NCBI RefSeq assembly: GCF_963676685.1
Contig: NC_092351.1
Location: forward strand, 61,008,001 to 61,072,000
Reading direction: 5' to 3'
DNA: 64,000 nucleotides
DNA from: Mytilus edulis
Taxonomy: Eukaryota
Shown: positions 643-61,900 of the stretch, in pieces
Numbering within the stretch: the stretch's first letter is position 1
Layout of the letters: each line of letters opens with the position of its first letter
The notes under the pieces: model-generated
The model's input: only the letters and a program-made list of their open reading frames with translations
Databases searched by the model: none
What the model was told of the DNA's origin: nothing
Translations under genes and position numbers: made by a program

Positions 643-1599
643 TTAAAGAGAATCAAAAAGTTAAACCACTGTCCACGAGTATTTGCAGGGTTTGAGCGCC
701 CATCATCAGATTTTATCTAGTCACATTCTGTGTGTACCTTTCCCAAATCGGTAGCCTGTATTTCAGTTGTTGTAGTTGGTTCCTGTCAGTCTTTCGTATT
801 GTTTTTTTTTTCAAAATTGTTTTATTGTAAATGAATGGCGAAATATGCAAAGTGATATTCAAACTAATAAGTTTTTTAACAAATCAATTCATTAAAACTT
901 TTTTTACGCGGAACACCATTAGTTAATTATGACACTAACCTAGAAAATCTATAAACGTAACCTTAACTATAATTCCTTTATAATAATATGTTTCATCAAC
1001 GTTAAAAACAACAGACTATAGTTATTTAAAAAAAAAAACATTGTTTCGTTTTAATTAAGAAAAAGGCTTGTCGATAGGTAGAAATCATGTTTGGTATAAT
1101 TGGTTTTAGGATCCATGAATCTGTGTATGCATTTGTCATTATATTGTCGAGTAATACATATTTATGATTGATAAGAGATATAATATTGTCACTACATATA
1201 TAATGTAATTACGACTTCTTTAGTTCCTGCTTAGTTGGGTATCTTGCGGTTTGTAGTTTTTACGTGGATTTCTTTAACTGCGTGCTGTTAAGATGGCTTT
1301 TTGTGGAGAATAAATATTTTTAAAATCGGTGGGGATCGTATGTAGAAAACGGTAAATATTTATGAATTTGAGCTTTATATACATTCGGAACATTTTTTTT
1401 TTTTGGCGGATTGTCCCTTTAAATGAAACAACTGCTATTGTTATAGGTCATACCTTTACAGTTTTTTTAGCTGCGAGATGGCTAATATCTATTACTCACA
1501 TGTTCGTCCTACCTGATACTATGGCCTATATTTTTTATCTGAACTTTGACAAACGTTTAAATGTTTATTAAAACTTGTCTAAAAGAAATAATCCACAAT

Positions 1600-2880
1600 G
1601 CTTTTAAACATAAAAATGGTAGCATAAGCAATTAATTATAACGTTTGGATACTCTATGGCATATGTGTTAATAGTAAACTAAAAGGTAAAACATGCTATA
1701 CAAATTAAAGGACCGAGAGATCAGAATGCTGGAATTTCTTATTGAAAACATATTTGTTAAATTTGGACATTCATATGGGAACGAACTGTGCGCCTCTTTG
1801 CCGACTGATTCTTAATTTTATACGAATCGGATTTCCTTCAGACACAAGCAAAACTATCAAAAACTAGGAGATCAACGACGAAATGTATGTCAATTTATTT
1901 CCCATTCAGATATATTGTTGATATACTATCCATTAAAGGAGTACTGGCTACGAGATATGAAAAAAGGGAATGATCTCGTTTGGTTTGATTTTCTAAAGAA
2001 ATTATAATTCATTTAAAGTTGACAATTAGGTTCAATTCTGTCAAAATAAGCAAATAAATATGGCTGTCGAATTATTCCCTTGCTAATGAATAATTTAAAC
2101 ACATTGATTCCGTATCCATGTGATTTTCAATTTAACCCATTAAATAAGGATTAGTTACGCATGCATAATTCATGTTCAGCCACTTAAAGGAAAAAATGTC
2201 AACATTGAAAGTGAAATAAAGTCGGACCATTTCGTTGACTGATTTGATTCACAAAAAAATCATTCTTATTCCGGTAAAAACATTAATTGCCTTTGTTAAC
2301 CTATCACATGAAATCTATCAGTCCTATAAAACTGTGATCGTCGGCAGTACATGCATTCGGAGGTTCTCTAAATAGTTAATAAGGGGTGTCTAGACTAAAA
2401 TACACACGAAATACTGATATACATTATCGAGTTCATGATTTATTATCTGTTTATTCCAGAATTATTGTAATTTAGATATACGTTTTGGTATGTTTTAATT
2501 CAAATATGAGAATTTGAGTCAAATCGGTAAACAAGAATTTGACAGCTGGTACCCATTAAACAATAAAAAGTTGTCTAATTTGGTTTCAATTATATATCCC
2601 CTAGAACTATAAATTAACTATAAATTAAGGAAACAGAAGAAACGGCTTCATCTATCTCATTTTTAGACTTATACCACGAATTTAACATACATTGTAACCT
2701 TTGTACCAGAATCTATGACAATCGAGACGACTTTTGTTCTTCTAAATTATCAATTTTGCACAATATAGTACGATATACTTTGCCTGCAGTGGGATAACAG
2801 TTCACGACTTATTCGGTATTTAAGAGCTTGCAGCTGCTACGCAGATCTGTAAAACGACACCAGGGTGTGCGAAGAAAGTT
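1600..2880 (+). pseudogene. Decayed reverse-transcriptase retroelement fragment (Penelope-like RT type), split by a TIR insertion
   Basis: Degenerate RT remnants: MLEFLIENIFVKFG, MGTNCAPL, FRYIVDILSI, SSISFLDL, YDNRDDF, LIRYLRAC. Same family as 19996-20745. Frameshifted. Confidence 0.65.
1937..2556. mobile_element. Non-autonomous TIR element, probably Kolobok-type (TTAA target)
   Basis: Ends ttaa|aggagtactggct ... agctggtaccca|ttaa (degenerate TIRs). It interrupts the RT relic at LSI/NN. Confidence 0.5.
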
Positions 2881-3009
2881 CAACAGTGTGTGAGAAGAGA
2901 GTATAAAACTTAAAGACAGCTTTGAAGAACTAGTAACACTTTATTTCATCAAACCATATCATTTTTTCAAACATGAAATGGAAACGAATCCCTATTTGAT
3001 ATAGGTTAA

Positions 3010-3123
3010 TAGTTAAAACTGTCACCTTGGACTGCAATGTAGATCTAACCAGACTGTGAGTCAACTCTCGCTTTAACGATTGCGGACATTGTCTTGTCGA
3101 ATAATTGAATCGATTGTTTTGAT
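3010..3123 (-). pseudogene. Degenerate paralogous fragment of the TRIM-like gene propeller region
   Basis: Aligns with 4700-4810 (tgtcaccttggac...ttgtcttgtcgaataattgaatcgattg). Confidence 0.65.
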
Positions 3124-4389
3124 AAAAGCTTGTGTACAGGTTAAGATAATTATATTGTATACAATAACTTTAGTCAACTTTCCCAATCTTGCTAGATTGA
3201 AAATTGTTGGGTGTGTGTGTGAATACCATGAATAGTTTGAATAGTCTTAAAGTCTGTTTAGATCTTTTTCTTTTCCTAGGGTGGCTTCTCATTCTTCAAA
3301 TTGTTTGTCAGTGTTGAAACTATTTTAGTATTGTTTGGGTTTTTGGCAGAACAATACATCTTGCTGATATGGTGTGGTTTTCATTTTCCCACTTTGCATG
3401 GCTACCCTTCCGCCAGAGCGCATATATCTCCCCCGGTTTTTGGTCGGCTTCTTTTTCCTTAATGTATATTTTTTATCTCGTGTTTGTATACTGTTGATTG
3501 TCTTTTCCCCGTTTTTGCATTATTTCCAATGTCATTGGCAGTTTATTATCTTTCGCCTCTCATGTATGATTACTTCAACTTGTATTGTTTATCGAACATA
3601 CGGTGAATTATTCTGAATACATTATGATCTGAGATGGATTAAATACATGTTTGAAGAAATGATATTCAATATGCACGAATTTAGGGGAATGTGAACTCTT
3701 GTTGTAACTTACTTTTTACAGAAAGATCACTGAAGTGGCAGAATCTTTTGTTTATCACTAGAATGATAGAACTTCCGGATCAACTACCACAATTTACAAC
3801 AGTAGTATTTTCTTAATGAAAAATTTAGATTATAGTCTGAATAACGTTTAGCAATTATATAAACAAGAATATATTTAATGGTGATTAGAAAACAACTAAA
3901 TATTGAATAGTTTCAAGAAGTATATAAATAAAGGCAACAGTAGTATATCGCTGTTCAAAACTCGTAAATCCATGGACAAAAAACAAAATCGGGGTAACAA
4001 ACTAAAATGAGGAAAACTCATTATATATAAAAGGAGAACAACGACATAACATAAAAGTGTAACACACATATAAAACATAATAATATCCAGTCAGAATTTA
4101 AACGAAATTCATCAAGTATTGTCTTTTATTCAAAATGAATTAATTTAAATTGTTAGTGGCACTTTGATACGAATTATATTTATTTACCGGATAGACAGAA
4201 ACAGACATTTAAACTAATATAAATTCATGTTCAGAAAGTTATGACAAGAGATCACAACTTATTATACAGTGTATATATGAAAGTTTGACAGATAGTTGTC
4301 AAAAAAATTGAACTGATTTTTGTCCTGTCATGATATGGTCGTAAATGTTTTAAATCGGATTTTAGATTGTAAGGTACATTTCCTCCCTT

Positions 4390-6108
4390 TTATGACACGT
4401 TATAAACAACGGCTGGTCCACGTATCTGTGCAAAAAGCAGGTTCTTTCTCTTTTTATCAAAATACAAAGCACATGGACGCGATATTCTATCATCAAATGT
4501 AAGAATCTCTTTACCATTTGACCCATCTGACGACAGGATAACTATATTGTTTGTATAGTAAGAACAAACAAAAATGTTTGCATCTTCATCAAGGGAAATT
4601 GACAAAGGATAAGCCAGCAAGTCTGCGTCGCTAAACACCCACTGTTTCATTCCAGTAACGGCATAGCATGTAATCGTATGCTGTTCTGCTCTGGATTCGT
4701 AGATGTTGTCACCTTGGACAGCAATGAAGATCGAACCAGACTTTGACTCACTTCTCGCTTTTACGATTGTTGAAATTGTCTTGTCGAATAATTGAATCGA
4801 TTGAATTCCCTTTGATTTAACATAACATATTATCATTCTTTTTGTGAAGTGGTAATCTATGCTTTGACATTCACCATTTGTTTTAATACTTTCTATAATA
4901 TTCCCAGAGTCGATTTCGATAATTTGAACGGCACGAATGGCGGATATGGCTACTGTTTTATCACTAATGATGGTAATGTCAAACGGCCCACTAGTTACTT
5001 GAACTGTTTTCAAGAGAGTACCATCAATACTGAGCATGATAAGTCTCTGTTGGCTCAAATCTGCAAATATAAATTGTCCGTTAGATAAAACAACGGCACC
5101 ACGAATGTCAGATCCCTTAAACAAATCATCTGGCATTTCAATTGTTGATGCACAAGTAAGTTTTATTTCTTCAACAGTCCTCTGGATAGATTGGGGAATT
5201 TTCGTAAAAATCTGTGCCTGCTTTTCTCTTTCTGCATTGAAAATAACTGATAACGACCCTAATTCTACAGATATAAATCCAAAGGTTGTTATTGATGATA
5301 ATATCCCTATTGTATCATTAATTTTGCATTTCCAGATATTTTGTTGAAGGCTTCCATCTTTTATTAAAGTCTGGAGATATTTTTCTTCCTTTTCAACATC
5401 AGCTTCAATTAGTTTACTACCCATATATGCCTGAAGATTTGATCCATATTTCTTGACGGATGTTATGCTCTCCTGCAATTTATCTGCATATTTTGTTTTC
5501 TGTGAAAGATCTGCTACCAATTTATTAGTTTTTAAATTAACCTTCATCTCGGCAGCATCTAGTTCTGTCTGTATCTGTTGTTCTAGTTCATCCAAATGAG
5601 AGTTTATTGTAATTCTCAATTGTGTGACTTCATTCTGACATTTTTCTCGTTGGTGGAGGAACCTGGTTAGATCATCTATGCGATCCTTTATGATTGCATC
5701 AATGTTGTTTTTTATGTCTTTGATACTTATCTCAATGGAATCAAATAAAGTTGATGACTTGGCATTCTTTAGAACATCACGAAGTAGCTGTAAACCAACA
5801 CACTTTTGGTGAATAGTAGAAATACAAGCCGGGCAACATAGTTTGTTATGATGAGGACAATAATTTTCAAATTTCATATCATGCTCCGTGCAGAAATTTG
5901 AGATATTTGCAATTGATGCGGGAAGTTTTCTATACCTTTTCATAGAAATGACACCATGTGTTCGTGTTGCTTTCGAAATACTGTGATGATTATCATGGCA
6001 TTCCGTACATAACCCTTCATCGCATTCAGGACACCAATAAGCGGATACTTTTGTAATATGACGAACTTTACAAACTCCACAAAATGTACTGTCGGAAGAG
6101 TCAGACAT
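4390..6108 (-). CDS. B-box-type zinc finger, coiled-coil and C-terminal beta-propeller (NHL-like) protein; RING-less TRIM-like, 572 aa
   Basis: N-terminal CxxC..CxxC..CxxC..H..H, then CxxH..CxxH..CxxC..H B-boxes; heptad-rich middle; propeller repeats (PFDITI, YPLSISLD, RPCALYFD). Splice acceptor tttacag lies just upstream of the ATG, implying a non-coding first exon. Confidence 0.88.
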   Translation of the reverse strand: MSDSSDSTFCGVCKVRHITKVSAYWCPECDEGLCTECHDNHHSISKATRTHGVISMKRYRKLPASIANISNFCTEHDMKFENYCPHHNKLCCPACISTIHQKCVGLQLLRDVLKNAKSSTLFDSIEISIKDIKNNIDAIIKDRIDDLTRFLHQREKCQNEVTQLRITINSHLDELEQQIQTELDAAEMKVNLKTNKLVADLSQKTKYADKLQESITSVKKYGSNLQAYMGSKLIEADVEKEEKYLQTLIKDGSLQQNIWKCKINDTIGILSSITTFGFISVELGSLSVIFNAEREKQAQIFTKIPQSIQRTVEEIKLTCASTIEMPDDLFKGSDIRGAVVLSNGQFIFADLSQQRLIMLSIDGTLLKTVQVTSGPFDITIISDKTVAISAIRAVQIIEIDSGNIIESIKTNGECQSIDYHFTKRMIICYVKSKGIQSIQLFDKTISTIVKARSESKSGSIFIAVQGDNIYESRAEQHTITCYAVTGMKQWVFSDADLLAYPLSISLDEDANIFVCSYYTNNIVILSSDGSNGKEILTFDDRISRPCALYFDKKRKNLLFAQIRGPAVVYNVS

Positions 6109-31400: not shown

Positions 31401-31867
31401 AGGTGTGCCTTTCTGGAGGTTTGCCTATATTGTCAGAAGTTATAAAATACAGATAATGCTTTTTTGTAAACATTGTATAGGAACATTGTTTAGCAAAGCA
31501 AATCGTGCAAATTGCAGAGTAACAAAGCAATTAAACTCGTATTAATAATTGCTGTATCTCAGCCTCATTATAATGCAACCAATCACAATCTATACGTGAT
31601 AAGTAATTTATTCAAGATGCACGGTGTGTATTTCGACTGAAACTAATAGCACCGCACCGTGATGCGAAGCAAAAAACGGTCTGCATGTTTCGGTTGAAAA
31701 ATTCAAGACAAGTATTCATTTGTACACAATGTTCATTTTTTTGTAATACTCCGACGGTGTGACGGTGTCTCCAAAAAATTTCAAGAATCGAATATTTTTT
31801 TTTAGTTTTCTTTTTTTAAAACACTCTCCCACTGTTATAAAATATTCTCACATCGAGGCTTATATTA

Positions 31868-32041
31868 TGTAGGACTCAAATCTATGGTGGGTTCCAAATC
31901 TATGGCAGATTCCTAATCTATGGCAAATGTGACGTCATGCCATCCCAAATCTATGGCAGATCTTTTTACAATCCTAATCTATGGCAAGTTTTGTAATTTC
32001 CTAATCTATGGCGGATTTTTGTTGTCTCTAAATCTATGGCA
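31868..32041 (+). repeat. Left TIR (31868-31935) and iteron array
   Basis: AATCTATGG at 31879, 31897, 31915, 31948, 31976, 32003 and 32031. Confidence 0.92.
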
Positions 32042-32549
32042 AATTGTGTGCAGATGGAAAACAATGCAGTACACTTACGACCAATCACTTGTCTTAAACA
32101 AGTAGAAATGTACGACAACGAGATCATGTCTATAAACATTTGTAAAATAAACACTCCATAATGGTCAACCCAAAAAAAATCGTAAATGATGCATTTATAT
32201 ATATCGCAGACATCAAGATTAAAATAATCTTCCCCGTAAAGAATAAACATGTTCTAATCTGTGCATGGTACCTGTTTAACTAAACCAACTATGGAGTCCC
32301 TTAGCAAAAAAGACGGCCATTTGTCATAAAAAATATATAGAACTGATTCCATTTCTAAAAGGGAAAATCCATTGTTTTCCCTTTTTACCTTTGTAAACCA
32401 ATTTTAGATTAATTTAAATCATTAAATGCCTTTTTAATGCTTTATTTCTAACTTAAGTATTAGATTTTTCATATTGGCTCAAGAATTTTAACAAATTTTA
32501 CAATATCTTGTAAATTTATTATGAAATGTTTCCTCCAATATACTATATA

Positions 32550-32871
32550 CTAGTCCATAGACAATTTCTAACAATTCACATAGCATAAAATTTGCTATCT
32601 GGTCGTTAGTCCAAAACTGGAGAAGTGACTTTTAATTGTTGTAAAAACACAACCTCAATAAAAACTTGATAAATACCAAATGTTTAATCCACAAATGTTT
32701 TGAATAGATATTTTGGTCTTTCGACCAAAAATAATGTTTTCAAACGATATTGTATTATTCTGGTCTATAGACCAAATATTCATGTCTTTTCTTATTCATA
32801 AAGAAAAACCAATCAAACAATTAAACCAATCTATAGTATGTTTGATACTCATAAACTGGTCTTTAAACCAA
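32550..32871. promoter_or_regulatory. Left cluster of 16-bp palindromes YTGGTC-N4-RACCAR (putative protein-binding sites)
   Basis: 32713 ttggtc-tttc-gaccaa, 32760 ctggtc-tata-gaccaa, 32856 ctggtc-ttta-aaccaa, 32599 ctggtc-gtta-gtccaa, and a degenerate copy at 32550. Confidence 0.65.
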
Positions 32872-33144: not shown

Positions 33145-36100
33145 TTACAACTGACAACTGTCTAAATAATATATAAGTTGGTTTGAAATAGAAGGATAAA
33201 TATGTGATGTAACAATTCTTTCCCAAAGACTTAGAAATATTTTGAGGTAAAATATCAACACTAAATGCAAATATTCGTCTATCAAAAAATACATGAACAA
33301 TGATTCTAAAAGAAAATATATCGCTAAGTATAATCTATGTTTTTGATAATAACTTTTAGTTTCACAAAAATAAATGTATGAAGAGTAAATTTTTCTGGTA
33401 ATTTCTTTCACATTCTTTTTCCTTTTCTTTCCTTGGCATGTTTTCTCTGAAATAGAAGAAACGATATATTTACATAATTTTGCTTAATGCATATTCATCT
33501 TTTTTTCTTCAGCTTTAAAGGAAGATATCAATATGAGGTTCAAAATGGTGATACTTTCGTGACTATTCACGAAAAAAAAATCAATTCAAATGAAAGAACA
33601 AAATATAAATCACATAATACCTTCTGATTCTTTTCTATTTCCTTTTGGTGTCCTTTTTTGTTGTTTTGGCTGTACTTGCACCTGAAATGTAAGAAATCAT
33701 ATACATTGTAGTTTGTATGAACAAATCACGTTTCTTAATAACATCGAATGCAGATTTTTAAATAATTAATATTTCAGTTAACATATAACAGAAGACGATG
33801 GCGAAAAACAATTGTCACATTTAGTAGCGTGATCGACTTCTTAACATTGCAATGATTTCCACAGAAACAAGTATTAAAATGTGTAGTGGGTCGCTCTAAA
33901 GTTGGAGCGATAGGACTGGTTTTTTTTTTTACTTTGCTCCATGTTGAAGGTTCACTGTCACTTTCGAATGAAAAACGTAGAGCGCTGTTCCTTTGATTTA
34001 AAACATTTCGTGACGTATAGTAATTTTGTGTCCTATATTGATAAACTATGTCTTATCTTTTAGTTTAATGAACTCTGGAAAGCATAATATACGGACAAAC
34101 TTATCACACAGACTTAAAGCATTATTTATATTGTGATGATATACCTTTTATACTTTTTTATTTCAATACAATGAAACTGGAGATTAAATTTATTAATATA
34201 TTAAATGAGAAATATGAAAACTTATATAGATAAGAACTAGACCGACTTACAAAACATTCCTCTCGCTCATTTTCCAATAATCTCCTTAGTTCTGCTGGAA
34301 TGTCTTGATCAACGGATGGTCCTTGTCTTTTCAATTGCTGTTTGGGTAACAAAGGTAAAATCCATTTTGCCTTTGATAGAACTTTTGTCCTTCTGTATGG
34401 CAAACTGTCTCTATTTTTTTCTAGATGTCCAAGAAATCCTCCCCACCACTTTTGCTCTGTATGTTCTATTTGATCGGTGAAAAGACATTGCCACTGTGGT
34501 ATTCTAGATTTGATCTTATTTATATCTATCTTCTCGAACAGAGGATTGATAACTTTTGGTATTCCCTTTGGTAAATTAGGTTTTCCGGAAATGAGTTGAA
34601 TAATGCCATGTTCAGTTTTCCATTCGCTGTCTTGGAAAGCTTTGTACTGCATTTTCACATTATTTGTTGCTAAATCCCGTATAAACTTATAATGCAAAGG
34701 TTTCGTATGCTTACGAATGTCGTTAAGGCTTGATGTTATCCATGAACGAATGTCATAAATAGCCTCTATATCCTTAACGTTCGGAAGCATCTCCTTCAGA
34801 CGAGGCATTGTTTCAGCATCATTTCTACGAAGAGTTTCAGCTATTCGACTAAAAGCGGCATCCACATCTTCGTGTGTATGTCCTACTGGTAAAAATGATA
34901 AATGCACCTGAAAAGAAAATTTCCTATTTGTAACAGTATAATAATAGGTGATTTAAATACGCTAACATGTAATGCTAGACTGAACTTACATTATAAGTGT
35001 GTAAAATGCCAAATTGATTCATAGTATGTCTTGTATTATAAGAGTTGACAATACCCTTCGTATTGAAAGGCAGGAAACTTCAAAATGTATATGAATAAAG
35101 AGCACGTGATATGCCCGTATTATTTTCAAAGAATGAAGTTCTAGTACTTCTAAATATCATGTTATAAATCTATAAAAAAAATAACCTTCAAGGGATGTTA
35201 TACTGATAGATATAAACCAGCCTACAAGGTTTCATGAAATCATTTTGAGTTTTTGTCCGAAAACTGACTAATCCCCCCCTCCTTTTATGACTAAAATTCC
35301 ACAACTCGGAACGATAATTGCCATAATATGCAACATCGATAGTATACTTCAATAAACACTTCACCAAAATATCATGAAAAATGTTCTACGCATTTGACAG
35401 TTATTATACGAAAACACTCGAAAAAGCCCCTTTTAAATGGATAAAATTCCTATAACTTGAACACTTTTAAAATCTATAATTTATAAAAATAGAAAGAAAC
35501 TCAGGTAGACAGATCTATATAAGGGAGCTACCATTTGATTTTAATGGGGGGGGGGGGGAGGGGGGGGGGGGCTAGGATGAAATTTGAAAACAATATGCAG
35601 GACAGTTTTGAGTAAAAAAATGAGACACTTGAAAAAAAAGTCAGGTCGACTATTTAGGTTAATAAAAGTCAGGATAAACTAAAAAAAAAAAGGCAGGACC
35701 AAACAGAGTGAAAAATAAAAAGGCAGGACAGAGATTACAGCTTAAAAAAAAATGCAGGACAACATTTTTCATCCTAAATAGTAATTTCTATTCAATATTA
35801 TAAGTGTCACTGGGAAAACAATTTCTAACTAAAATCGTAGAAGTATTTTACTTCCATGCTAAAACCTTATATTACAGGCATCATAACTTACATGATCAAC
35901 CAAAAGTCCCACAAAAAATTCCCAAAAAGGGGTCTTGTAAATGGATGTTTTACAGAGAGGCGTAGCAATAGCATGTATAAACTGTAATCAATGATACATG
36001 TGTGCAATTTCAGAGGTAATTATATTGATAGGCAATAATTAATGTGTCAATTGATCATATATTTTCATTGTCTGGTAAGATACAATGTATACAATGTATG

Positions 36101-49085: not shown

Positions 49086-52000
49086 ATATAAATGGAATGT
49101 AATAAAAATGCAGTTATGGAATTATGAGCTGTGTAAAACTTGCAATTGAAATGCTGTATCCGTAAAATATTCAATAATAATGGACAGGCCGTCTATACGG
49201 ACAAAAGGTCTTTTGCCCCCCCCCCCCCCCCCCCCTATTTTTTCCATTGTCATTGTTTCTTTAAAAAATTGAACACGCACCGGCGTGACACGGAGAAAAT
49301 AATGGCAATTTAGACAGCTAAAACTGTTCTTATGACATGACATTGGAATAAAAAAATCATGTGTCACGTTGGCGCACGGAACACCTGCAAAATGAATGAT
49401 AATTACAATATTTGAATTATGAAAGGAAGTTTACCAACTTACCTCACCCAGTTGCTAATATTAGTGGTTTTGAAGTTCACCCAAACAAACATTCAAATCT
49501 CAGGGACTATTCTAACATAAGACGTAGCTTTCCGAAACAGAATTTAAGAAATGAGAAAATAGGGGGGCCAAAAACAGGCCTTATCGTACCAGAATTGCCA
49601 GTTTTCCTGCCACATCGACTTCTTGCAACAGAGATTGGTTTTGTTTCTGTTATAATTAAGAGTTTTTATTTCTATTCACTGAATCATAATATGGGTCATG
49701 TGGTCAATTTTATTCGTTTAACTTAGTTCTAAAGCATAAAACATGGCGCGAACGTTACGATTTTGTTCGAGTATCCGTACAAAAAATGATACAAGAAATT
49801 GGAAGATTTTTTTTTTACAAAACATACATTAAAATTAACATTATAATAATTGTGTTTGCAAAGTTCCATTCTATTGTTGTGACAAATACGAAAAATCTAA
49901 TTCAAGATATTGCCTTTTTCTGTGAATAGATGTAACGGGAGGGGAGGATTTAACCAGGACTGACGACAACGTAAACACATTGGATAATGTGCAAAGAAAA
50001 TCCTCGACGCGTATGTCACCAGTCCACACGAAATTATTGTCACCAATGGACAGTTCTGAAGGTATTTTTTTAATCCTCCTTCTTGCAAACAATTGATCTG
50101 CTGCGTCGTAATAATAGTCATGTGTAATTAAAATAGGTATGCAAGTAATATAAAATATATTCCACTTAATATATATATGATTTTACAATAAAACTGGAAG
50201 AGACCAAGATCAAGTAAAACATGTTAATGAAAATTATTTACTATTTGAATAAAAACCATAATTACGATGCGAAAATGCTATGTATATTTTATTTTTGCAA
50301 CAGATGCATCGACAGTTGAAGATATTCTAGAACGTAGCATGAGTTCTTGCACTGAAGCGCATATGAATAAAGAAGACGTTTCCGATAGCACACCAGTTAC
50401 AGTGGAGCAGTCAATTTTGGACGATTATTTAATAGGTATGATATACCATCTTCATTCTCTTAATAGGTGCTACTCATGGTATGAAGTATAGTGTCTTTTA
50501 ATCTTACTTTTTATAGCTGACCAAATGTTGTATTGGCTTTGCTCATTGTTGAAGGCCGTATTATGGTGACCTATAGTTGTTAATTTGTGTCATTTGGTCT
50601 CTTGTGAGGGGTTGTCTCATTGGTTATCATATCACATCTTCTTTTTTTTATACTTGTCTGTTTTTTTGACATCGCGTAATATATTTTTTTCTCTAGTTGC
50701 TGTTTTTGTTTAATAACCATTTAAAAAAATAATAGTGAATGTGTTGAATTTATGTTAAATGTCCAGTGGAAAATATTATATTATATGTGTCTATCCAACA
50801 AGCCCAGCCAAGACGTTAGGCTTTATTCATTATGTAACACTCCGGAAGAAGAGTCATCATACAAGGACACATTGGAGACATTGGATTGTTATTTTCTCAG
50901 CGGAGAAGCCGCAGGTATTAATTTTTAAGTCGACGATGACGATTACGATGACGGTGACGTCCAGTGGCAAATATGATGGCATATAATGGCGATTGAGTGT
51001 TAATGTTTTATTAATACACTCATATATTGTACTAGATAGCATGCTAAATTGTGTTTTAACCCAGTACTTCTCAGTTCTTTTCTTTTACTACGAAATGTTA
51101 CATGTTTGGCGAAAAAGTAAAAATGGGTAAGTCTTAGTTTTGAACAAACTTGGGGATCGAACACACGATTACAAGGATCGCTTCCAGAAGCAAGACCACC
51201 GAGGAGGTCTTTTCTTATTGCGTATACGGGTACTGGAAATTGTAACCATATCAAAGTTCAGAAATATTACTTTTATTTCAAATGTTCAAACACTTTCTCA
51301 TTAACTGAACAACATATCTTTTTGTATATTTTGAATTGCTGATTTTCCATTCTAAAATGATAGCATTTGTTTACTTTTAGGAGACACATTAAAGGTACAT
51401 ATTCAGAACTTAGTTACACCTGCCGATGATCGCTGTTTTCGAAATCTGGACACGAAACATGCTCACTGTCTAAAACAATTTTATGAAAATCAGCAAATAT
51501 GTCATACAATTCTCATTGGCAACATTGTCAGCGATGTTACTACTAATATAGATAATTTGTCAAAGCTTCTTCAAGAACCTGGCAAAGTAGCAGTTGAAAC
51601 TTTAGGTGGTAATCATACAAGACATGCGCTACAATGTTTATTCGCAAGCCAAACTAAACCTATTAGCATGGTAACATGTCGGTTATACAACAAATTACCA
51701 GACGAGTTGGCGCTACAATTAGGATATGAACACAATGCATCTAATACAATAGGAAAACCGACAAGTTTTGTTGATTTAGTAAAGGTGTTTCGAAAAGAAG
51801 CAACAAAAATAGTAGGAGATACAGATATTAGCTGCATGCAAAATAGTGAAGTAAAGCAATGGAAAGATATTTTATGTACCATTCTAGGGATGGACAGAAA
51901 GGCGGAAGAATTTCATAACAAGTACAAAATTGTTTTAAAAATTGCAAAATCAAAGGATTCAGTATGGAGAAAATTTTTAGAATTCTGTTCCGCTTTCGAA

Positions 52001-55000
52001 ATGAATGAAATTAGAAATACTCCAAGAGGATCTTTAAAGGTTACACAGTTGAGAGATTTTTCAATGCTTTCTAGTGATAACCAAATACATATTTTGGAAG
52101 AAACATTACAGACAAAAGACTGGAGAGTATTTAAGAGAGAAGTAGAAAGGTAAATAAATGCAAATCATGACGTGTGAACTGTAAAACAAATTCACTGCAT
52201 TATATGATTTTCTTAAATGTTGATTTTATATTTGTAAATGAACGATACTTCCTTACTATTAATTGTTCATTTCTTGGTTTGTAAATTATGCTTCAAAAGG
52301 CATTCAGCAAACATTTACGTTATATCGGGAATGTTATTAAAAAAAAAAAGAACCGTGACTTTCGTAATTTAATTCACAGTTTAAGGAAAAATTGGAGCAT
52401 TTCATCGACCTCAGTAAGGAAATTCATTTGTAATATTATGATATTAAAAATAAATTATGAAAAAAGGAATGTACACACCAGTTTTCAAAGATTTATCACC
52501 TATAAAATTCTTCACGAAAACAAAACACAAAAAAAATACCTAATAAACGCTTACACAAGAATAAAGGAAATGTGCAGGCAATGTTATGAGAGACAGCAAC
52601 CAAACGACACATATAAACTAAAACTATCTAGAGACAACACATAGCCTTACAAATATAGGCAGTCGCCATGCAATTTGTCAAGCTCTTAATTTTCCATTAT
52701 ATACATTTTGTGAATAAGTTACACAAAGACTACCAAAGATCTTTCGTTTTATCGAAATCACAAACAAAAAATGTATTTATGAAATGTCAATCGCAAATTC
52801 ATCTCGTCAACCTTTTCGATAGGTCGTGTATTTGGTGGTTGATGTAGACTGCAGCCTTGTAATTTTGTAAACTTATGTTTTTTTTTGGTTTTTTCTTAAT
52901 GTATAAAAAGTGCAATTTCATAGATCGCATCGATATTTTTGGTAATAAGCCCACCTTTCATTTAAAAAAAACCCGGTATATTGAAATATTACAGAAAAAA
53001 GCTCGCACTGTACTTATATCAGTATTGAAGTTACTAACTTTGATGATATCACTGGATTTATTTTGTAGTGTTAGTTCAGATCGAAAGAAAACAACTGGGA
53101 AAACAAAAGCAGATCCGTCAGATGTTGACAGAAAGATTAATGAAAGGTATTTTAGCACTTTAAACGAACATACAGAATAAGTTTCATGCCTCCATTTATG
53201 ACAATTTTTTTCTGAATTTTATCATTTCACGGGATTTCCAAATGTCATTGATTTATATGATTGCGTACTTTAATGTTTGAACATCATTTGGTGCATTTCC
53301 GAACGCGCATATAAATCATAAATCCCTACTGCATGGCTGGCGGCACAAAACTGCCATTTTGATTTGTTTTAGTTTACGATTTTATTCCAAAACTACCGTT
53401 TTGTTAATTACTGTTAAGAGATATTTTTTTTTAAATTTTAATGTTTTAATTTGTTGATGAAATTTTTTAATATTAAATACTAGACTCGCAAATTTCTGTT
53501 GCAAGCTGGTTTAACTGTAATAAGGGAATAGTTCACTTCTTCTTTATGGCAAGCATTTAAAATGTGTCTTTGCCGATTTGAATTTACCCATTAAATAATT
53601 GAGTAATTTTATTATATTTATCTAGTGAGTGTAAAATAAAACAACTGACTACCGAAAGAGAAAAATTGTCAACTACTTCATCAACATTAAAATCAAAGTT
53701 GACAGAAGAACAAAAGAAAACAAAGGACTTCGAGACATTGTTGAATCAAGAAAGGAAAAAATGCAGCGCACTTGAAATTAAATTACAGCAATTGAGGAGA
53801 TCAGAGACTGAACTCAAAGTTGTCTTGGATAAGCAGATTGATAAAAATGAAAAATCTAGTAATCTTCTACAAGTTGAAAAAACAAAATACCAAACCCTGG
53901 AAGAAATGTACAATAAATTGGTAAGTTGAATATTCTGTTTTATAGGGCTGTAATAGCCCTTTAGACAAAACGCTTATTATTTTGTTGATGATATGTGGAA
54001 TAATATTCTGAAACAGACTTACGATAGTTATAAGATCACATTAATGATGCATAAAGATTTGTTCAATTGACCATACAGTCTGCTGATCTTTATCTTGCAT
54101 TACATAATTAATCAAACATATTTATCAGCTTAGAATAAATACGAGAGACAACAAAGAAAAATGGTTTATACAATAAACATCTTGCATGTTATGTACCTGT
54201 TTTAAACATAATAATAAAATAGTGCTTATTTAAATGTTCTCAATACGCAAACTCTGAAAACAATGATGTTTTTACAGGAAGAAGCAAAAGCTTGTTTAGA
54301 AAAGAAAGTTCAGGAATTTGAAGAATCTATTAGATGTCAACATACTGAAAAACACATAAGCCAAGTAAACTACTCTATTGTAAGTTTTATAACCTACGTA
54401 TATATTTACCTAACAATAAAAAAAAATGTCCTTTAATTCTTTGTTAATTGTTTTTCATTTGTCTTTTTGGGGACTTGTATATAGCTGACTATGTGGTATG
54501 AGTTTTGCTAACGATGGTAGGCCGTGCGGTGACCTATAGCTGTTAATTTCTGTGTCATTTGGTATCATTGGCAATCATATCACCCATTCTTTTTTACAAT
54601 AAGACATTTTTTGTTTGTTCAACAAATGATATTAACTTTGTTGATCTGAGTGTACGTAATTAACTTAAAATCGGGAAGATTTGTTGAGTTTCGTACACGT
54701 GTAGTTCTGCTTTCGTTGCAAGTTACAAAATAATTTTGACCCCTGTATTCATAATTTCTCTTTTTTTGTATTTGGTCAGATTCTATTATTCATATGCATT
54801 TCCTTTACAAATGATTGATTTTCATTGGATAATTTTAGTTTTTCCTTTTTATTCTAGTTTATTGTAAATTTTAGTTCCAACGTGTGTATCGTCAAGTTTG
54901 TTGACTATTATAAAATTGAGAAAGGAAATGGTGAATATGTCAAAGCGACAACCACCCGACCATAGAGCAAACAACATTTTATACATTTTATAATGACTAT

Positions 55001-56577
55001 TATGTATATCAGTCTAGTATGTCAAGTGAACGTTAAGTTTTTCAATATAGATTTGTATATTAAGTTTGTTTGCTGTTTATGACTACATATTACTGTAACT
55101 GTCTGTGACGTGCCATTGTCATTAGAACACTTTTCATAAAGTCTCTTAAAAAGATATACATAACATATTTTTATATATTTACAGGTATCTGATAGAGTCT
55201 CGACTCCAAAACAAAAACTGAAAAATGACTGCAGTGACACTTTAAACAAGAAGAAAAGAAGGATGAGTTCAAAGGTAAATAAAAGAATAAAAAAAAGGTG
55301 TACAAACAATTATAACAAAATCTCCGATTACAGAATAATTCTGGCTGTGACAGTATTGGCGTAAATAGACAGTGGGCAAATTTGAACATTCTGGACATTT
55401 CTGTCTCTCCAAGAATGTTTTCTATCCAGAGCAATTTTGAAAAAAAAGTTCTCAAAACTTGTGCTTTACTCCAAATCTTTTTGAGCCATGTGGGCCATAT
55501 TAGTTGGCAGGTGGAATCATTAAATTTTTTAAAACAAAATATTCCAATGATGAGTATTGTCGAATTTAGATAAATCTGGCAATATAATTTCAGAGGGGAA
55601 GATTTGCTAAAAGGTTTACAGATTACGACAATACATGTAGTACGCTTTTTTAACCTACTTTTAGGACGAGTTTAACTGCTAGATAGGTGGAGCCCAGTCG
55701 GCCATGTCTTTAAACCTTGTCAATCTTTCTGGTCTAGACACGAAGAAATACACGGTGTGGTATAAACTCTATCATATGTTTTGTGCAGTTGTAAGATGCT
55801 TATTTTTCATTTATGTTATAGGAATTTGAAGTTGGTACGTCTGTTGAAGCATTTTGGTATCCAGACAAGTGTTGGTACACTGCAAAAATACTAATGAAGA
55901 CAGGAAAAGGTAAGTACTGTTTTATTAAAACAAAATTTGGAGGACAAGTGTTATCAGATATTATATCAGACTGTACAAAATAATTCTGTCGTATAAAGAA
56001 ATTAAAGTGGAAATGTTTGTACTCAATCAACACATGTACAAAATGTATGTAAGTTGAAAAATAATCATATTATTAAAATTCTCCAAATCATGGTAGCAAT
56101 CCTGATGAAGCAATTCAACAAAAAAAGACTTGGCGTTTATTTTTACAGAACAGTACTTGTACTAAACTATCGTTTCGGTATATATTTATTTCAATAAATT
56201 GTTTTACTTATGAACTTTGTTTTAAATCTGTTTGCAAACTGAACGCCATGTATCAAATTTACTATAATATGGATTTTTTCCAAAGTACTACTTTTAGGCG
56301 TTGCATCGTCCTGAACATGTTTGTACTATTTTCCGATGGACGTACTTTTTAAGGCTTGTCACCACTACTTGATTGAAGTCAGTTACTCTTTACTAGTATC
56401 ATTATAGTTTCAACATTCAAGCAAAATTAGACCACAATTTATTATTCATTAATACTCAGATCTTTTAAAAATAAATTGATTTTTTTTACAGGCTATGAAG
56501 TAAAGTACGATCTTGATAAATTTGTCAAAGATCTCCCTTTGAAATATGTAAGAGCAGAAAAGATATCTACAGAATAG
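46354..56577 (+). CDS. ParB/Srx-like domain + coiled-coil + NLS + Tudor-domain protein, 694 aa, 12 exons
   Basis: Exons 46354-46476, 46890-47010, 48651-48734, 49930-50061, 50304-50435, 51381-52149, 53069-53146, 53626-53920, 54278-54364, 55185-55274, 55822-55909, 56492-56577 (2085 nt, open, GT-AG). ParB-like: VHIQNL..FRNLDTKHAHCLKQ..ILIG..VETLGGNHTRHALQ..RLY..LALQLGYEHN. NLS: KKKRR. Tudor: FEVGTSVEAFWYPDKCWYTAKIL..GYEVKYDLD...LKYVR. Confidence 0.82.
47278..47796 (+). mobile_element. HINE/DINE-1-like element with a (TCYG)n microsatellite
   Basis: 5' gcccc..ggggc hairpin, GTCC/GTTC/GTCT microsatellite at 47325-47425, ~170-bp internal tandem, 3' subTIR gtggggca plus a small stem-loop. Confidence 0.7.
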
Positions 56578-57482
56578 ACAGATTTGCTGAAACAAAGGAG
56601 AATGTCCATCATTGGAGGATAACTATGATGCTAGCCAAAGAGGAGAAATATTTGACGAACATGTGTTTTTTTATAATTATTATTGTTGTCCCTATAGAAA
56701 TAATATAAAAAAAAATGTTGTAGATATTGCGTAGTTGTTAATAATTGTCATAGAAATAATCATATAGCTACTCTGCGTAAAGAAGTACAGCAGTCACTGT
56801 GACAAATTTGTGGATTTCTTTATCATTTACTTTAACACCAGAAATTTGCGAAAAAAAAGAAAGCAATAGAATATACCAATAATAAACGTTTAACTTTTGA
56901 TTCATTAAGCTTATTAATTGCATTTTAAGTTGGGTAGTGATGTTTAATGGATAAATGATAGTTAATATCATTGACTTTAAGTTTTCTACCATTTTAGGTG
57001 AAGCGAATTAGTATCTACAACGTATATTTCAATATTAAAGACAGATACACCCGGTTCACAAAATCGTTAGAAAAATAAATCTAATTTCAAATAAAGTGTT
57101 CCAAAGTAATATGCAATTTCACTGTAATCAATAATATAGATCTAAAAACAGAAACATTTATATGAAAATCATCTTTCAATAAATACTTCGACTTGTATGG
57201 TACACGTTTTTCTTTACCAGAAATATGCATCATTTCGGGGCTTTTTATTGTTGAAGATTCGGTAAGGATTTTGCTCTTTTTAAAAGGCCGTATGTCACAG
57301 AAAACCTATAGCTTTTTTATGTCATTTGGTCCCGTGCGGAGAGTATTCTCACTCGCAATCATACCACATCTTCTTATTGAATATTTGAAAACAAAATGTT
57401 ACCGGTTGATTATGTATATATACTGTATGTACCTTTTTAGTCTATGAACAATTGTGATTAGAGTAACATTTTCACGTTGTTC

Positions 57483-57953
57483 TTGGTCTAAGAACCAAAA
57501 AGCAATATACGCATTATATTTTACATTCAATTTTGTTCTTGGTCTAAGAACCAAAAAGTGTTATACGCATTATATTTTACATTCAATTTTGTTCTTGGTC
57601 TAAGAACCAGAAAAATAAGATTGATACTATTTTATTTGATATCATTCATTTAGTTGGTCTTTAGACCAAAATCTGTTGGACAATAGCGCTATCATCTGCA
57701 TGAATGTAACATTTTATTGTTTAAATTAATTAAATATAAACAACTTAGCACTGACGCCTAATGTCTAAAGTGTTTCTGTTTTTGGTCTCAAGACCAGACT
57801 TCTTCAAGCATAAACAGTTTTACGCAAGTCAATACAAATAACAGTTCGTTGTGTTGTTTTGAAATGATGGGTTCATGCATGGATTCAGCCATACCAGATT
57901 TATTCAAATTGAGAACTAACCCGATATTTTTTATATTCTGGTCCAATGACCAA
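57483..57953. promoter_or_regulatory. Right cluster of 16-bp palindromes YTGGTC-N4-RACCAR
   Basis: 57483, 57539 and 57595 (ttggtc-taag-aacca[a/g], 56-bp tandem); 57654 ttggtc-ttta-gaccaa; 57782 ttggtc-tcaa-gaccag; 57938 ctggtc-caat-gaccaa. Confidence 0.7.
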
Positions 57954-58615
57954 AATATGTATACATCGATCTAAAATTATTCCAATTCTGTAAGACAAAA
58001 CTGTTATAATTTATCAAAAAATAATTGGGGAAAATTTCAATGTCTCTGCTAGTGATATATCAATGGTATGGGTGTTATAATTTTCAAAATTATTCAAACT
58101 TTGCAATGAAGTCAGTTATATATGTCGATCTGCATTGGTATTTTAACTAGTACATGCAAGTATAATGGTTGACATGTATCAAAGAGGAAAAGAATGCAAT
58201 TTCCCTTTTAGAAATGGATTCAGTTATAGATAAAAAAAAGTTACAAATACAAAAGTTTGAATTTTCAAATAATGATTTTTAAGCGATATCGTTAATACAT
58301 CTGTTTTAGGGGATGACGATTTAAATCAAATTGGTATCTGGTAATTTCATCTTTTACTTTATAAACATTGTCAGCCGTAGAAAGTAAACTACTACTAAGA
58401 CTCCTATTCTAAAATATGCGCTACTGAAAATAGTGGCGCCCTTATTCATCGCGGGCTTCGGCCGGTACAGCACATGTTGTCCGTCTTCGGGATAATAGGT
58501 CACACCTTCCTTTAAACCATCCTCAAATTGTTGTCAAGGGAAATACCTTCATCTTGAATGGTGTTCAAATCTATGAGTTCCGCCATCGTTGGCGACTATT
58601 CTAAAATATGGCGTT

Positions 58616-58748
58616 ATAGTTTTAAAGGTAATAGGATTATAATTTAGTACGCCAAACGCGCGTTTCGTCTACACAAGACTCATCAGTGGCGCTCATATCA
58701 AACTGATATTTATAAAGCCAAACAAGTACCAAGTTGAAGAGCATTGAG
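58616..58748 (-). repeat. Retrozyme-like fragment with a hammerhead (58649-58692, GUU triplet) inside the transposon right end
   Basis: acgccaaacgcgcgtttcgtctacacaagactcatcagtggcgc. Confidence 0.75.
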
Positions 58749-58784
58749 TTTTATTGTGACCTTATATGTTACTCTTTTCCCATG

Positions 58785-58914
58785 ATCTGCCATAAATTTG
58801 GAGAAAACAAAAATCTGCCATATGTTTGAGTTGTTTGGCGTTTGCAACGTCACATATGCCATAGATTAGGAATCTGCCATAGATTTGGAACCCGCCATAG
58901 ATTTGAGTCCTACA
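58785..58914 (-). repeat. Right TIR (58847-58914) and iteron array
   Basis: Reverse complement tgtaggactcaaatctatggcgggttccaaatctatggcagattcctaatctatggcatatgtgacgt, plus two degenerate iterons further in. Confidence 0.92.
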
Positions 58915-61900
58915 TATATACTTTGAAGGAAGATATAACGATCATCTGTTTCCCTGGAGCCTACTTTCTCAACATCGACCTTTCTATGATATAGTCCAAA
59001 ATGTAGTTTGCTTTTCTGAGAATTGAAGTGTAATGACGAGGCTATGGTTCGAAATCACCTTTCTGCACCATAATAGCCTATCAAGTTACGTAGAGACCAT
59101 TACTTGAACGGTGTTGATATGTTTCGAACTAACATAAAAGTAATAATTAATCCGATGTAACTAAATGTTATAAGTAAAGTACATGTAATTGGTAAGTTTG
59201 TTCCAAACCAACCGACATTGTCAATTTCTAAATGCAAGTCAAGATATAACTGCATCTGTTGTATCCTTTATAGCAAGGATGAGTGTGATTTGAAATCTGT
59301 GTAATAGTGGAATAGTTAAAAACAATCAAAGAAAAGTATAATTGATAAATGGTTCACTGTTCGTCCAGTTGCAAATATATCATGCATGTAAATGACAAAC
59401 AACTACCCGTGGTGGGTCTTCCCGCATGAAGAACGTGATAGACTTGAAAATAATGAATACTGGAAAGGGACAGAAACTTCACTTTGCAAATGTTCAAATA
59501 CGAACCCCACAGAGTTGTTTCTATGACCATTCAGCATACAAAATAAATGGCACTCTCTCAACACGAGGCATCTTATTTAACGTCCTCATCAGACGAGGCT
59601 GCCTGTATACATACATGTATGTACCTGAATCTCCGCACAATCAATTACAAACAGACGCCTTTTATTTATTTTTTTAACACATATCGACTATTTAAATGAT
59701 AAAACTCCATAAAAGGCTTTGCATCCTTTGAATTGTATGTTAACTAGATTTCAACACAAATTAATAATAAAACCAAATATGTTGCATATAAAAAAAGAAG
59801 TCGTAGTATGATTGACAATGAGACATGTCTCCACATTATACATTTGTTTCCAGTTTTATTAAAAATTAAGACGAGGTTTTTAAAGAAAAAATATTTGGAT
59901 ACATTGATTTTTTTTAATTACAATACTTTACGAAAAAGGTTCTGAATGGAACGTTTAACTATAAATAAATACAAAGATATTCAACAAATTTTGAAATAAT
60001 TGACAAACTTCTTAAATTAATACACACACTAGCACAACGAAATCCACGAAAATACTTTTAATAGCTTACCATTTGGGGATAGCAATAATATTTCCGAATT
60101 GATATAAATAAAACTCTATTAACTTTAGCTTAAATGAAATCAACCTTATCTTATTCCAAATATTTTACATAAAAGCGCCAGCCTTCAGTAGAACTGTAAT
60201 AGTATTGAATTTAAATACAATAGTAAATTTACTTCTAATAGGTCAACTCTGAATAAGTAATCATTATGCATAAATAATCAATAACTGCTGATTTATTTGA
60301 TATCTTCTTTATAACCAATCAACGTTGTTTTTGAGATTTGTTCGAAGACTAACAGTTGTTCTGATTGATTGATTGGTATTTGAAACGACTTTCAGCACTT
60401 TAGGTTATTTTTGGCGGTCAGTTTTTATTGTTGAAGGAAGCCGGTCTTGTCGAAGAGAATAACCTATTTCTGGCAGGAAAACTGATAATCTTAGCCAATT
60501 AGGATTGCAGTCGAGCGCACTTGCCGAGTTGGAAACTCGATCTAACAACCTCGGTATTGACATGATAAGGATACAATAGTTGAACTTCTTACACCACTCA
60601 GCCACTGAAGCCATTGAAGATAATGAAAAATAATAAGCCGATGTTCAGTAGAAAATATCAATATTTAATCAAAAATTGTTTATACAGCTTCAAGTATTAA
60701 ATGCGATTAAAACTTTAGATTTAAATCAAATTTCATATTTAAAAAAGTGTCTACGTAAGAACAAAAAAGACGACATCAACGAAACACTAGAACAAATGTA
60801 CCTTGATAAAATCGTTAATAAAAAAAGTACTTAACTTAATTTGTCTGGTAGATGTTGTCTAAATCATTATTTAATTATGATCGGATATTCCAATATTTAC
60901 TTTATCTAATTAAACTGTTTGCAAGGAATACATTCGATAAAAGCCTAGTATTTACATTAAATGAAATAAATGGAAACACAAACAAAACATTTGTTAGGAA
61001 TGGATTTTTGGTAAGTTTTTAAATTTGGAAAACAAAAATATAATACCAGAAAGCACTTCTACAGTAACGAAATTCAATCATTCGTCTAACCTTGTAGAGT
61101 TTTTCTATACTGAATAGCTTTGAACGTTCGCCTTATGTTTGAAATTTGACTACTAAAAATGCAGGACATTACAAAGCAAGACTGCAATATTTGGTGTGTG
61201 TAATGATTGTAAGGTATAAATATCCAACTGCCAGGTGTCATCTGACTTTGACGTCATTTTCCTCCATGCTCAGTGGTTAAATTTTTTTTTATGTGTTTTG
61301 GCTGTTTTTCTGATACTATATGCAATAGGTCTACTATATTTAGTGTATGGAAAGCATATTGTGTGTATGGTGTACATGTATTTCCAGTTTGGTTCACGCA
61401 GACCTAATTTTCTTGAATAATGTTAAATTAATGTGATAGTTGTAGTAAAGCTTTGTCTATAGAACTTTCAGCATAGTACCAATGGTTAGTAAAGAAGGCG
61501 AGACATTTCAGCTGCACACTTGTTTAACCTAACTTAAGATTTTCGAATATGAACAATTGTGGAGTTTTTCTTAATAGATACGCCAATTTCTCTTCTACAA
61601 CACCTATACAGTTGTAGCCCGTCACAATGTATATAAGTTGGAACAAAAGGAACGTAAGGTGCACCCTTCCTTCTTCTCCTTTTTCCTTTTTTAACTAACT
61701 TCAGTTTTTCGAGCATAAACCTTCACGCAATTTTTCTTAGTGGATACACTAATGTATGTTCTACGTGCATCACCTGTACAGTCGTTGCCCGTCAAAATCT
61801 TCGTACATATCGATCTGAAATCAAATAAAAGGTTGCCACTCTCCCCCCATGCACCGCCCCCCCCCCCCCAAAAAAAAATTATTTTCGTTTAGTCAATTTC

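Follow-up and report, generated by a model that had tools for sequence, protein, structure and literature searches.

A transposon of 25.9 kb in the genome of Mytilus edulis carries arrays of a 16-bp palindrome, TTGGTC-N4-GACCAA, in both of its subterminal regions, and it encodes, in addition to a transposase, a conserved second protein of which the N-terminal domain is predicted to adopt a ParB-CTPase-type fold. The arrays most likely act in cis, as places where a symmetric dimer of some protein encoded by the element docks, as judged from the sequence and arrangement of the sites. The product of the second gene, hereafter called the partner protein, in which the ParB-like part is followed by a coiled coil and a Tudor-like domain, is the reader that is favoured here, with somewhat less than even confidence. 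The element lies within a 64-kb stretch of DNA, which is referred to as the window.

Two arrays of a 16-bp palindrome

A sequence-only reading of the window had pointed to six sites of the form YTGGTC-N4-RACCAR at 57483-57953. Upon direct reading of 57300-58200 and a pattern scan, all six have been found as exact matches, starting at 57483, 57539, 57595, 57654, 57782 and 57938. Three of them, Rt1 (57483..57498, TTGGTCTAAGAACCAA), Rt2 (57539..57554) and Rt3 (57595..57610), are carried by units 1, 2 and partial unit 3 of a 56-bp tandem repeat (57477..57614), which has one palindrome per unit and comprises 2.4 units in the window copy, in agreement with the tandem amplification recognised earlier; other copies of the element have 3.4-4.4 units. 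The right array is completed by R4 (57654..57669, TTGGTCTTTAGACCAA), the arms of which are perfect, R5 (57782..57797, TTGGTCTCAAGACCAG) and R6 (57938..57953, CTGGTCCAATGACCAA). The left array (32600-32871) consists of four sites, the three exact ones being L1 (32713..32728, TTGGTCTTTCGACCAA), L2 (32760..32775, CTGGTCTATAGACCAA) and L3 (32856..32871, CTGGTCTTTAAACCAA); the fourth, L0 (32600..32613, TGGTCGTTAGTCCA), is degenerate by one mismatch in the window copy and intact (…GACCA) in other genomic copies of the element. Neither the sites nor the tandem repeat are assigned to a strand.

The two clusters thus contain 10 sites of 16 bp with inverted arms of 5-6 nt. Their symmetrised consensus is approximately tTTGGTCt-nn-aGACCAAa, in which the centre is free, and the 20-bp duplex form of the palindrome is TTTGGTCTTTAGACCAAA. 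The inversion of the arms gives the sites a dyad symmetry, such as a dimeric reader would call for. The centres of the two half-sites are spaced 10 bp apart, and both half-sites are therefore presented on one face of the DNA, a geometry usual for a symmetric dimer. In the tandem units (57479-57495 onward), a second palindrome, GTTCTT-N5-AAGAAC, overlaps the TGGTC/AACCA site, and all of Rt1-Rt3 have AACCA as the right arm instead of GACCA.

Boundaries of the element

The distance of the arrays from the ends depends on where the element is taken to end. It could be read as 31866-58916 with iteron TIRs, and the right cluster had accordingly been placed 1.0-1.4 kb inside the right TIR. This delimitation has been rejected and the distance revised, because the iteron TIRs, including that at 58847-58916, belong to a separate MITE and other copies of the element end at ~58229. 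The true element extends from 32341 to 58225 (25,885 bp), with the termini AACTGATTCC…GGATTCAGTT and a 4-bp target site duplication (TSD), ATAG. Its left TIR (32341..32400, plus strand) starts with AACTGATTCCATTTCTAAAAGGG and is preceded by ATAG at 32337-32340, and its right TIR (58166..58225, minus strand) ends in …GGATTCAGTT and is followed by ATAG at 58226-58229. The left TIR has at 32357-32385 an 11-nt inverted repeat of its own, AAAAGGGAAAA-N7-TTTTCCCTTTT, which is kept partly in the right TIR.

In a search of the window's own genome, the outer ~480 bp and ~690 bp have been found to correspond to a family of ~1-kb MITEs, present in at least 40 copies, whose 70-nt TIRs are built of iterons of the AATCTATGGC type and of which the present copy is split by the 25.9-kb insertion. 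The left half of this host MITE occupies 31862..32340, with its iteron TIR at 31866-31935, and the right half 58226..58920, with its iteron TIR at 58847-58916; both halves lie outside the element and have no strand assigned, and the TGT…ACA termini and TA target likewise belong to the host MITE and not to the element. An intact copy of the MITE runs contiguously across the insertion point. Short fragments of hugely abundant repeats are present at 57327-57387, directly left of the right palindrome array, and at 58608-58700, inserted in the host MITE; they have a summed contig depth of 10^4-10^6 in four of four sequencing runs.

Other long copies of the element, on C6 (two), C14, C2 and C561, are homologous to the window from ~32330 to ~58229 only, and alignment of the ends gives ATAG on both sides as the TSD for the window and for one of the C6 copies, and CAAA on both sides for the second of them. 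The element is near-identical across contigs of four organism labels from public sequencing runs, and these contigs, from other individuals or species, track the window to 58225/58226 and no further, which provides independent support for the right end; contigs in X1 and X3 continue past this point with sequence that is not on the window. A search with the terminal 30-mer, which also supports the right end, gave 11 genomic occurrences as against 0 for the control, and the family is low-copy and without miniature derivatives. The element appears to be a cut-and-paste transposon of 25.9 kb that is low-copy and has recently been active.

Measured from the true ends of the element, which is nested within a MITE unrelated to it, the left array is found at a depth of 259-516 bp and the right array at 273-728 bp. 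L0, at 259 bp, and R6, at 273 bp, are the outermost sites, and Rt1 is 728 bp from the true right end. The palindrome had been contrasted with the TIR iteron and a second, dimeric binding protein had been deduced from the difference. This argument no longer applies, the iteron TIRs being foreign to the element, although a second specificity still holds on other grounds, because the true TIRs are without the motif and the outermost ~250 bp at each end contain no site.

Specificity of the palindrome

In the 64-kb window, YTGGTC-N4-RACCAR gives 14 strand matches, whereas 0.04 are expected from 100 dinucleotide-preserving shuffles of the window, none of which (0/100) reached 14. When up to one mismatch is permitted, 12 of 12 sites in the window are within the element, and 10 of these 12 are in the two arrays. 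An unbiased scan of the element for any palindrome with 5-nt arms recurring at least three times returned the TTGGTC-type motif and no other. Genome-wide, two sites 20-50 bp apart are found as 33 matches versus 5 in the control, nearly all of them in the 5-6 copies of the element; the motif is thus well above background and specific to this element family. Arrays are present in every copy of the element and at both ends, 3-4 sites on the left and 6-7 on the right being found in the other copies (4 or 5) at offsets matching those in the window.

Comparison among the eight independent sites confirms that arms are conserved and that spacers and flanks vary: pairwise identity is 93% in the arms, 42% in the spacers and 29% in the 24-nt flanks, the last being the level of random pairs from the same regions (30%). 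Because the flanks are at random identity, the sites are not duplicated segments, and the arms alone have been maintained. It is very unlikely, in our estimation, that the sites lack function and either remain from local duplications or arose by chance from the base composition of the AT-rich subterminal DNA. In the right array, three of six sites are indeed copies within one tandem repeat, and when genomic copies of the element are compared, variable columns are not significantly fewer in the arms than elsewhere (4.5% versus 7.8%, p=0.27), a comparison in which the copies, only 7-10% diverged, are too similar for a test of arm against flank. Such an origin is nevertheless hard to reconcile with eight independent sites that are alike in the arms alone, with the very low number expected per window, and with the occurrence at both ends of what is the sole recurrent palindrome of the element. 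Owing to the similarity of the copies, what speaks for function is that the arms recur at both ends in contexts that otherwise have nothing in common, rather than purifying selection between copies.

In the 1.37-Gb genome, the strict 12-base site is found at 147 places, versus 65 for the control. At C11:8.60-8.75 Mb and C11:25.87-26.29 Mb, arrays of TTGGTCATATGACCAA or TTGGTCAWWTGACCAA are found at ~0.4-2 kb intervals, forming a satellite-like repeat with the same arms as the element palindrome. These occurrences elsewhere in the genome, together with the location of both arrays downstream of the 3' ends of two outward-facing genes, would be accounted for if the palindromes were sites for a dimeric host factor or regulatory elements (for example an enhancer or insulator, or a signal related to 3' ends or to silencing) and not transposition sites. 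We consider this quite unlikely, in view of the near confinement of paired sites to a low-copy element family and of the mirror-image placement of the arrays, the outermost sites of which are at almost the same depth from the two tips as is seen for cis-acting transposition sequences.

Transposase and partner gene

A multi-exon transposase is encoded on the minus strand, and its last exon (34158..34907) matches Pfam DUF7869 at 2.9e-27. With a DUF7869-type transposase and a 4-bp AT-rich TSD, the element fits a Sola-like assignment. Sola2 elements have 4-bp AT-rich TSDs (PMC3627910), and the mussel element resembles the Sola superfamily in its 4-bp AT-rich TSDs (ATAG, CAAA, ATGT), its TIRs and its putative DDE-type transposase. 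It differs in that it is much larger, curated bivalve Sola1 elements having an average of 5.4 kb (PMC10294476), and in that it has a second conserved gene and palindrome arrays; its placement is via Pfam DUF7869 alone.

The partner gene is on the plus strand. A 265-codon open frame, 51356-52150, is the exon for the predicted ParB-CTPase-like N-domain and a helical domain, and its product is the candidate reader of the palindrome; it is followed on the same strand by coiled-coil exons around 53603-54433 and by Tudor-like exons at 55822-55980 and 56431-56574. The exon product has 94 representative homologues, in Mytilus, Mercenaria, Mya, Haliotis, Owenia and Branchiostoma, the long forms of which include the coiled coil and the Tudor-like domain.

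The two genes have been kept together. The frame of the ParB-like exon is open in five of five copies of the element, with 95% identity, and that of the transposase exon in the four copies in which it was located, with 97% identity. In two diverged paralogous lineages of the same genome, the divergent transposase/partner pair is kept at a distance of 23-25 kb, namely at C3:16304759 (-) / C3:16328420 (+), spanning 16304759-16329070, and at C12:67352910 (+) / C12:67327557 (-), spanning 67327557-67353380; the proteins of both pairs have about 34-41% amino acid identity to those of the window. The strict motif was not found for the C3 paralogous element among the matches listed. A compact version of the divergent pair, with DUF7869-type transposase exons on the minus strand and a ParB-like exon on the plus strand, is present at 700-4820 of a metagenome contig from another organism (L068, VSKX01088038.1, GC 40%), which stops 272 bp past the transposase stop; the metagenome contigs with family members are too short to contain element ends. 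The pair has thus been found in three further diverged lineages (C3, C12 and L068). An abundant DUF7869 clade of ~17 copies, with 46% identity, has no partner match nearby. Since the pair is kept in diverged lineages, the partner is an integral component of one clade of DUF7869 transposons.

A diverged member of the partner family, with the signature GGNHSRQA, is encoded on a protist-like metagenome contig (L071:1-3709, ERZ802827 NODE-8157, GC 51%), where it is split by a short GT…AG intron and followed by a methyltransferase-like ORF. Eight copies of a 19-bp palindrome, tcATCCCAGnCTGGGATga, are located on this contig at gene boundaries, including one within the intron of the partner-family gene. 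These might represent either a genome-wide repeat of the protist or a second pairing of a ParB-like protein with a palindrome; because one copy is in an intron, a genome-wide repeat of a different organism is the simpler reading, and the contig has not been counted as co-variation of motif and protein.

Predicted fold of the partner protein

An AF2 model of the partner exon product has a pLDDT of 95.4. In a Foldseek search with this model, ParB-CTPγS, Noc, KorB and Spo0J are top-ranked, with ~250 aligned columns, E values of 2e-5 to 3e-3 and a probability of 0.99-1.0; the ParB and Noc matches are at 2e-5 to 1e-4, and sulfiredoxin is ranked lower. VIA-align ranks PadC (Z 9.5) and KorB-CTP (Z 9.0) above pNOB8 ParB-N (200 aligned residues, Z 8.1) and Srx (Z 7.7). 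At the level of fold, the N-domain is thus modelled as a ParB-CTPase-type domain. The nearly invariant residues of the family, which include GGNHTRxA, HN and R, are pocket-like, and they presumably sit where ParB has GERRxRA and ENxxR. A homodimer prediction for the 256-residue partner module scored 0.30 as against a mark of 0.32 and speaks neither for nor against dimerisation.

The helical half was also folded alone (pLDDT 94.6). Its best Foldseek match is Spo0J at a non-significant E of 0.56. In VIA-align, matches over nearly the whole domain (~94-100 residues) are mostly to DNA-binding domains of the ParB family, namely KorB (Z 5.1), SopB-DNA (Z 4.5), KorB-operator (Z 4.3) and Spo0J (Z 4.3), all within the noise range for helical domains, and the top row is a designed helical protein, 8eov (Z 6.1, rmsd 7.5), of similar aligned length. 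With ParB matches at noise-level scores, the presence of a ParB-like DNA-reading domain, with an HTH, in the modelled partner is no more than plausible.

The likeness to ParB is one of fold. No member of the partner family reaches Pfam ParBc, and Pfam and PDB sequence searches gave no sequence-level link to ParB. A 2025 survey of the ParB-CTPase fold describes sulfiredoxin as its main eukaryotic representative and makes no mention of transposons or Tudor fusions (PMC12704722); it was conducted with Pfam PF02195 at the gathering threshold (PMC12704722), and the omission is probably due to the partner family missing Pfam ParBc. In the literature searched, no report of a ParB-CTPase-type fold on a eukaryotic transposon was found.

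Comparison with ParB-parS

The sequence-only reading had gone as far as a ParBS-like module on a eukaryotic transposon. Several features resemble ParB-parS: the mussel sites are clustered 16-bp palindromes, and the linked gene encodes a predicted ParB N-domain fold followed by a helical domain. In sopC of the F plasmid, tandem 43-bp units each contain one 16-bp palindrome bound by SopB, and the mussel 56-bp tandem, with its single palindrome per unit, is similar to sopC in layout. On the other hand, TTGGTC-N4-GACCAA has no known likeness in sequence to parS, NBS, OB or sopC, and its central 4 bp are free whereas the core of parS is conserved. The protein signature is GGNHTRxA in place of GERRxRA, and neither ParA nor CbiA was matched in Pfam among the larger ORFs of the element that were scanned. 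Furthermore, the setting is the nuclear genome of an animal, and the mussel protein continues into a coiled coil and a Tudor-like domain. The ParBS-like module is a reasonable hypothesis, for which the modelled ParB-type N-domain in a conserved second gene speaks, and against which stand the dissimilarity to parS and the noise-level matches of the helical half. As functional analogues of parS, the arrays would be sites where the ParB-like protein is loaded as an NTP-gated clamp, from which it would spread over or bridge both ends, the Tudor-like domain linking the 26-kb element, whether integrated or excised, with chromatin; in this full form the analogy seems to us unlikely.

Candidate readers of the palindrome

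Among DNA transposons, subterminal arrays are read in more than one way. The 12-bp motifs of En/Spm are read by TnpA and the sites of Harbinger by a Myb-like partner, each a second protein encoded by the element and not the catalytic transposase. In other systems the transposase itself is the reader. In piggyBac, 19-bp palindromes on both ends are bound by the two CRDs of the transposase dimer, and in piggyBat subterminal sites restrict activity (PMC11707139), while BED domains of Hermes bind quasi-palindromic subterminal repeats cooperatively (PMC10368747). The mussel arrays are like these in that a short motif of dyad symmetry, as would suit a dimer, recurs within the two subterminal regions but seldom in other parts of the element or of the genome. 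They are unlike them in that the sites begin only ~260 bp from the tips and reach to ~730 bp, in an element of 26 kb, and in that the candidate reader is predicted to have a ParB-CTPase-type fold.

The precedents of piggyBac, piggyBat and Hermes (PMC11707139, PMC10368747) would allow the arrays to be auxiliary sites for the transposase itself, whose last exon is given above, the palindrome being read by an accessory DNA-binding domain of a transposase dimer. The sites would then raise avidity for the ends or restrain activity, and the ParB-like/Tudor protein would act elsewhere, for example in chromatin or anti-silencing. The symmetry of the arrays about the element and their presence in all copies are compatible with this role, and the N-terminal transposase exons, in which no fold has been recognised, could bind DNA. 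We nonetheless regard this reading, the main rival, as somewhat less likely than that of the partner protein. The motif is neither in nor adjoining the true TIR, with the first 250 bp free of sites, whereas the transposase-bound repeats of piggyBac and Hermes start within the first tens of bp; moreover, a conserved second protein with the fold of a DNA-binding protein is on hand.

The partner protein is therefore favoured as the reader, as a conserved second protein with the predicted fold of proteins that read centromere palindromes and with a dimeriser of its own; being a chromatin reader separate from the transposase, it would also need an anchor on the element. The failure of its family to reach Pfam ParBc and the low scores of its helical half (ParB-family VIA Z of 5.1 or less) speak against this reading, which is put forward tentatively. 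If it is correct, the helical domain of each subunit would read one TTGGTC half-site and the coiled coil would provide the dimer. Arrays at both ends might then let the partner mark and bridge the two distant ends of the element; alternatively or additionally, the Tudor-like domain might tether the element to chromatin.

Implications

Subterminal arrays of binding sites are already known for DNA transposons, and it is the pairing with a second gene of predicted ParB fold that is unusual here. Also unusual are the presence of a dyad-symmetric 16-bp site at each end of so large an element and the joining, in a conserved second gene, of the predicted fold of ParB, which binds centromeres in bacteria, to a Tudor-like domain of chromatin-reader type. 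Were the arrays functional analogues of parS, they would constitute the first system of ParB-parS type in an animal nucleus, and on a transposon. If the partner reads the sites, the NTP-switch mechanism of ParB would extend to animal mobile DNA, which would also hint at a way for transposons of such length to locate and pair their two ends or to select chromatin targets.
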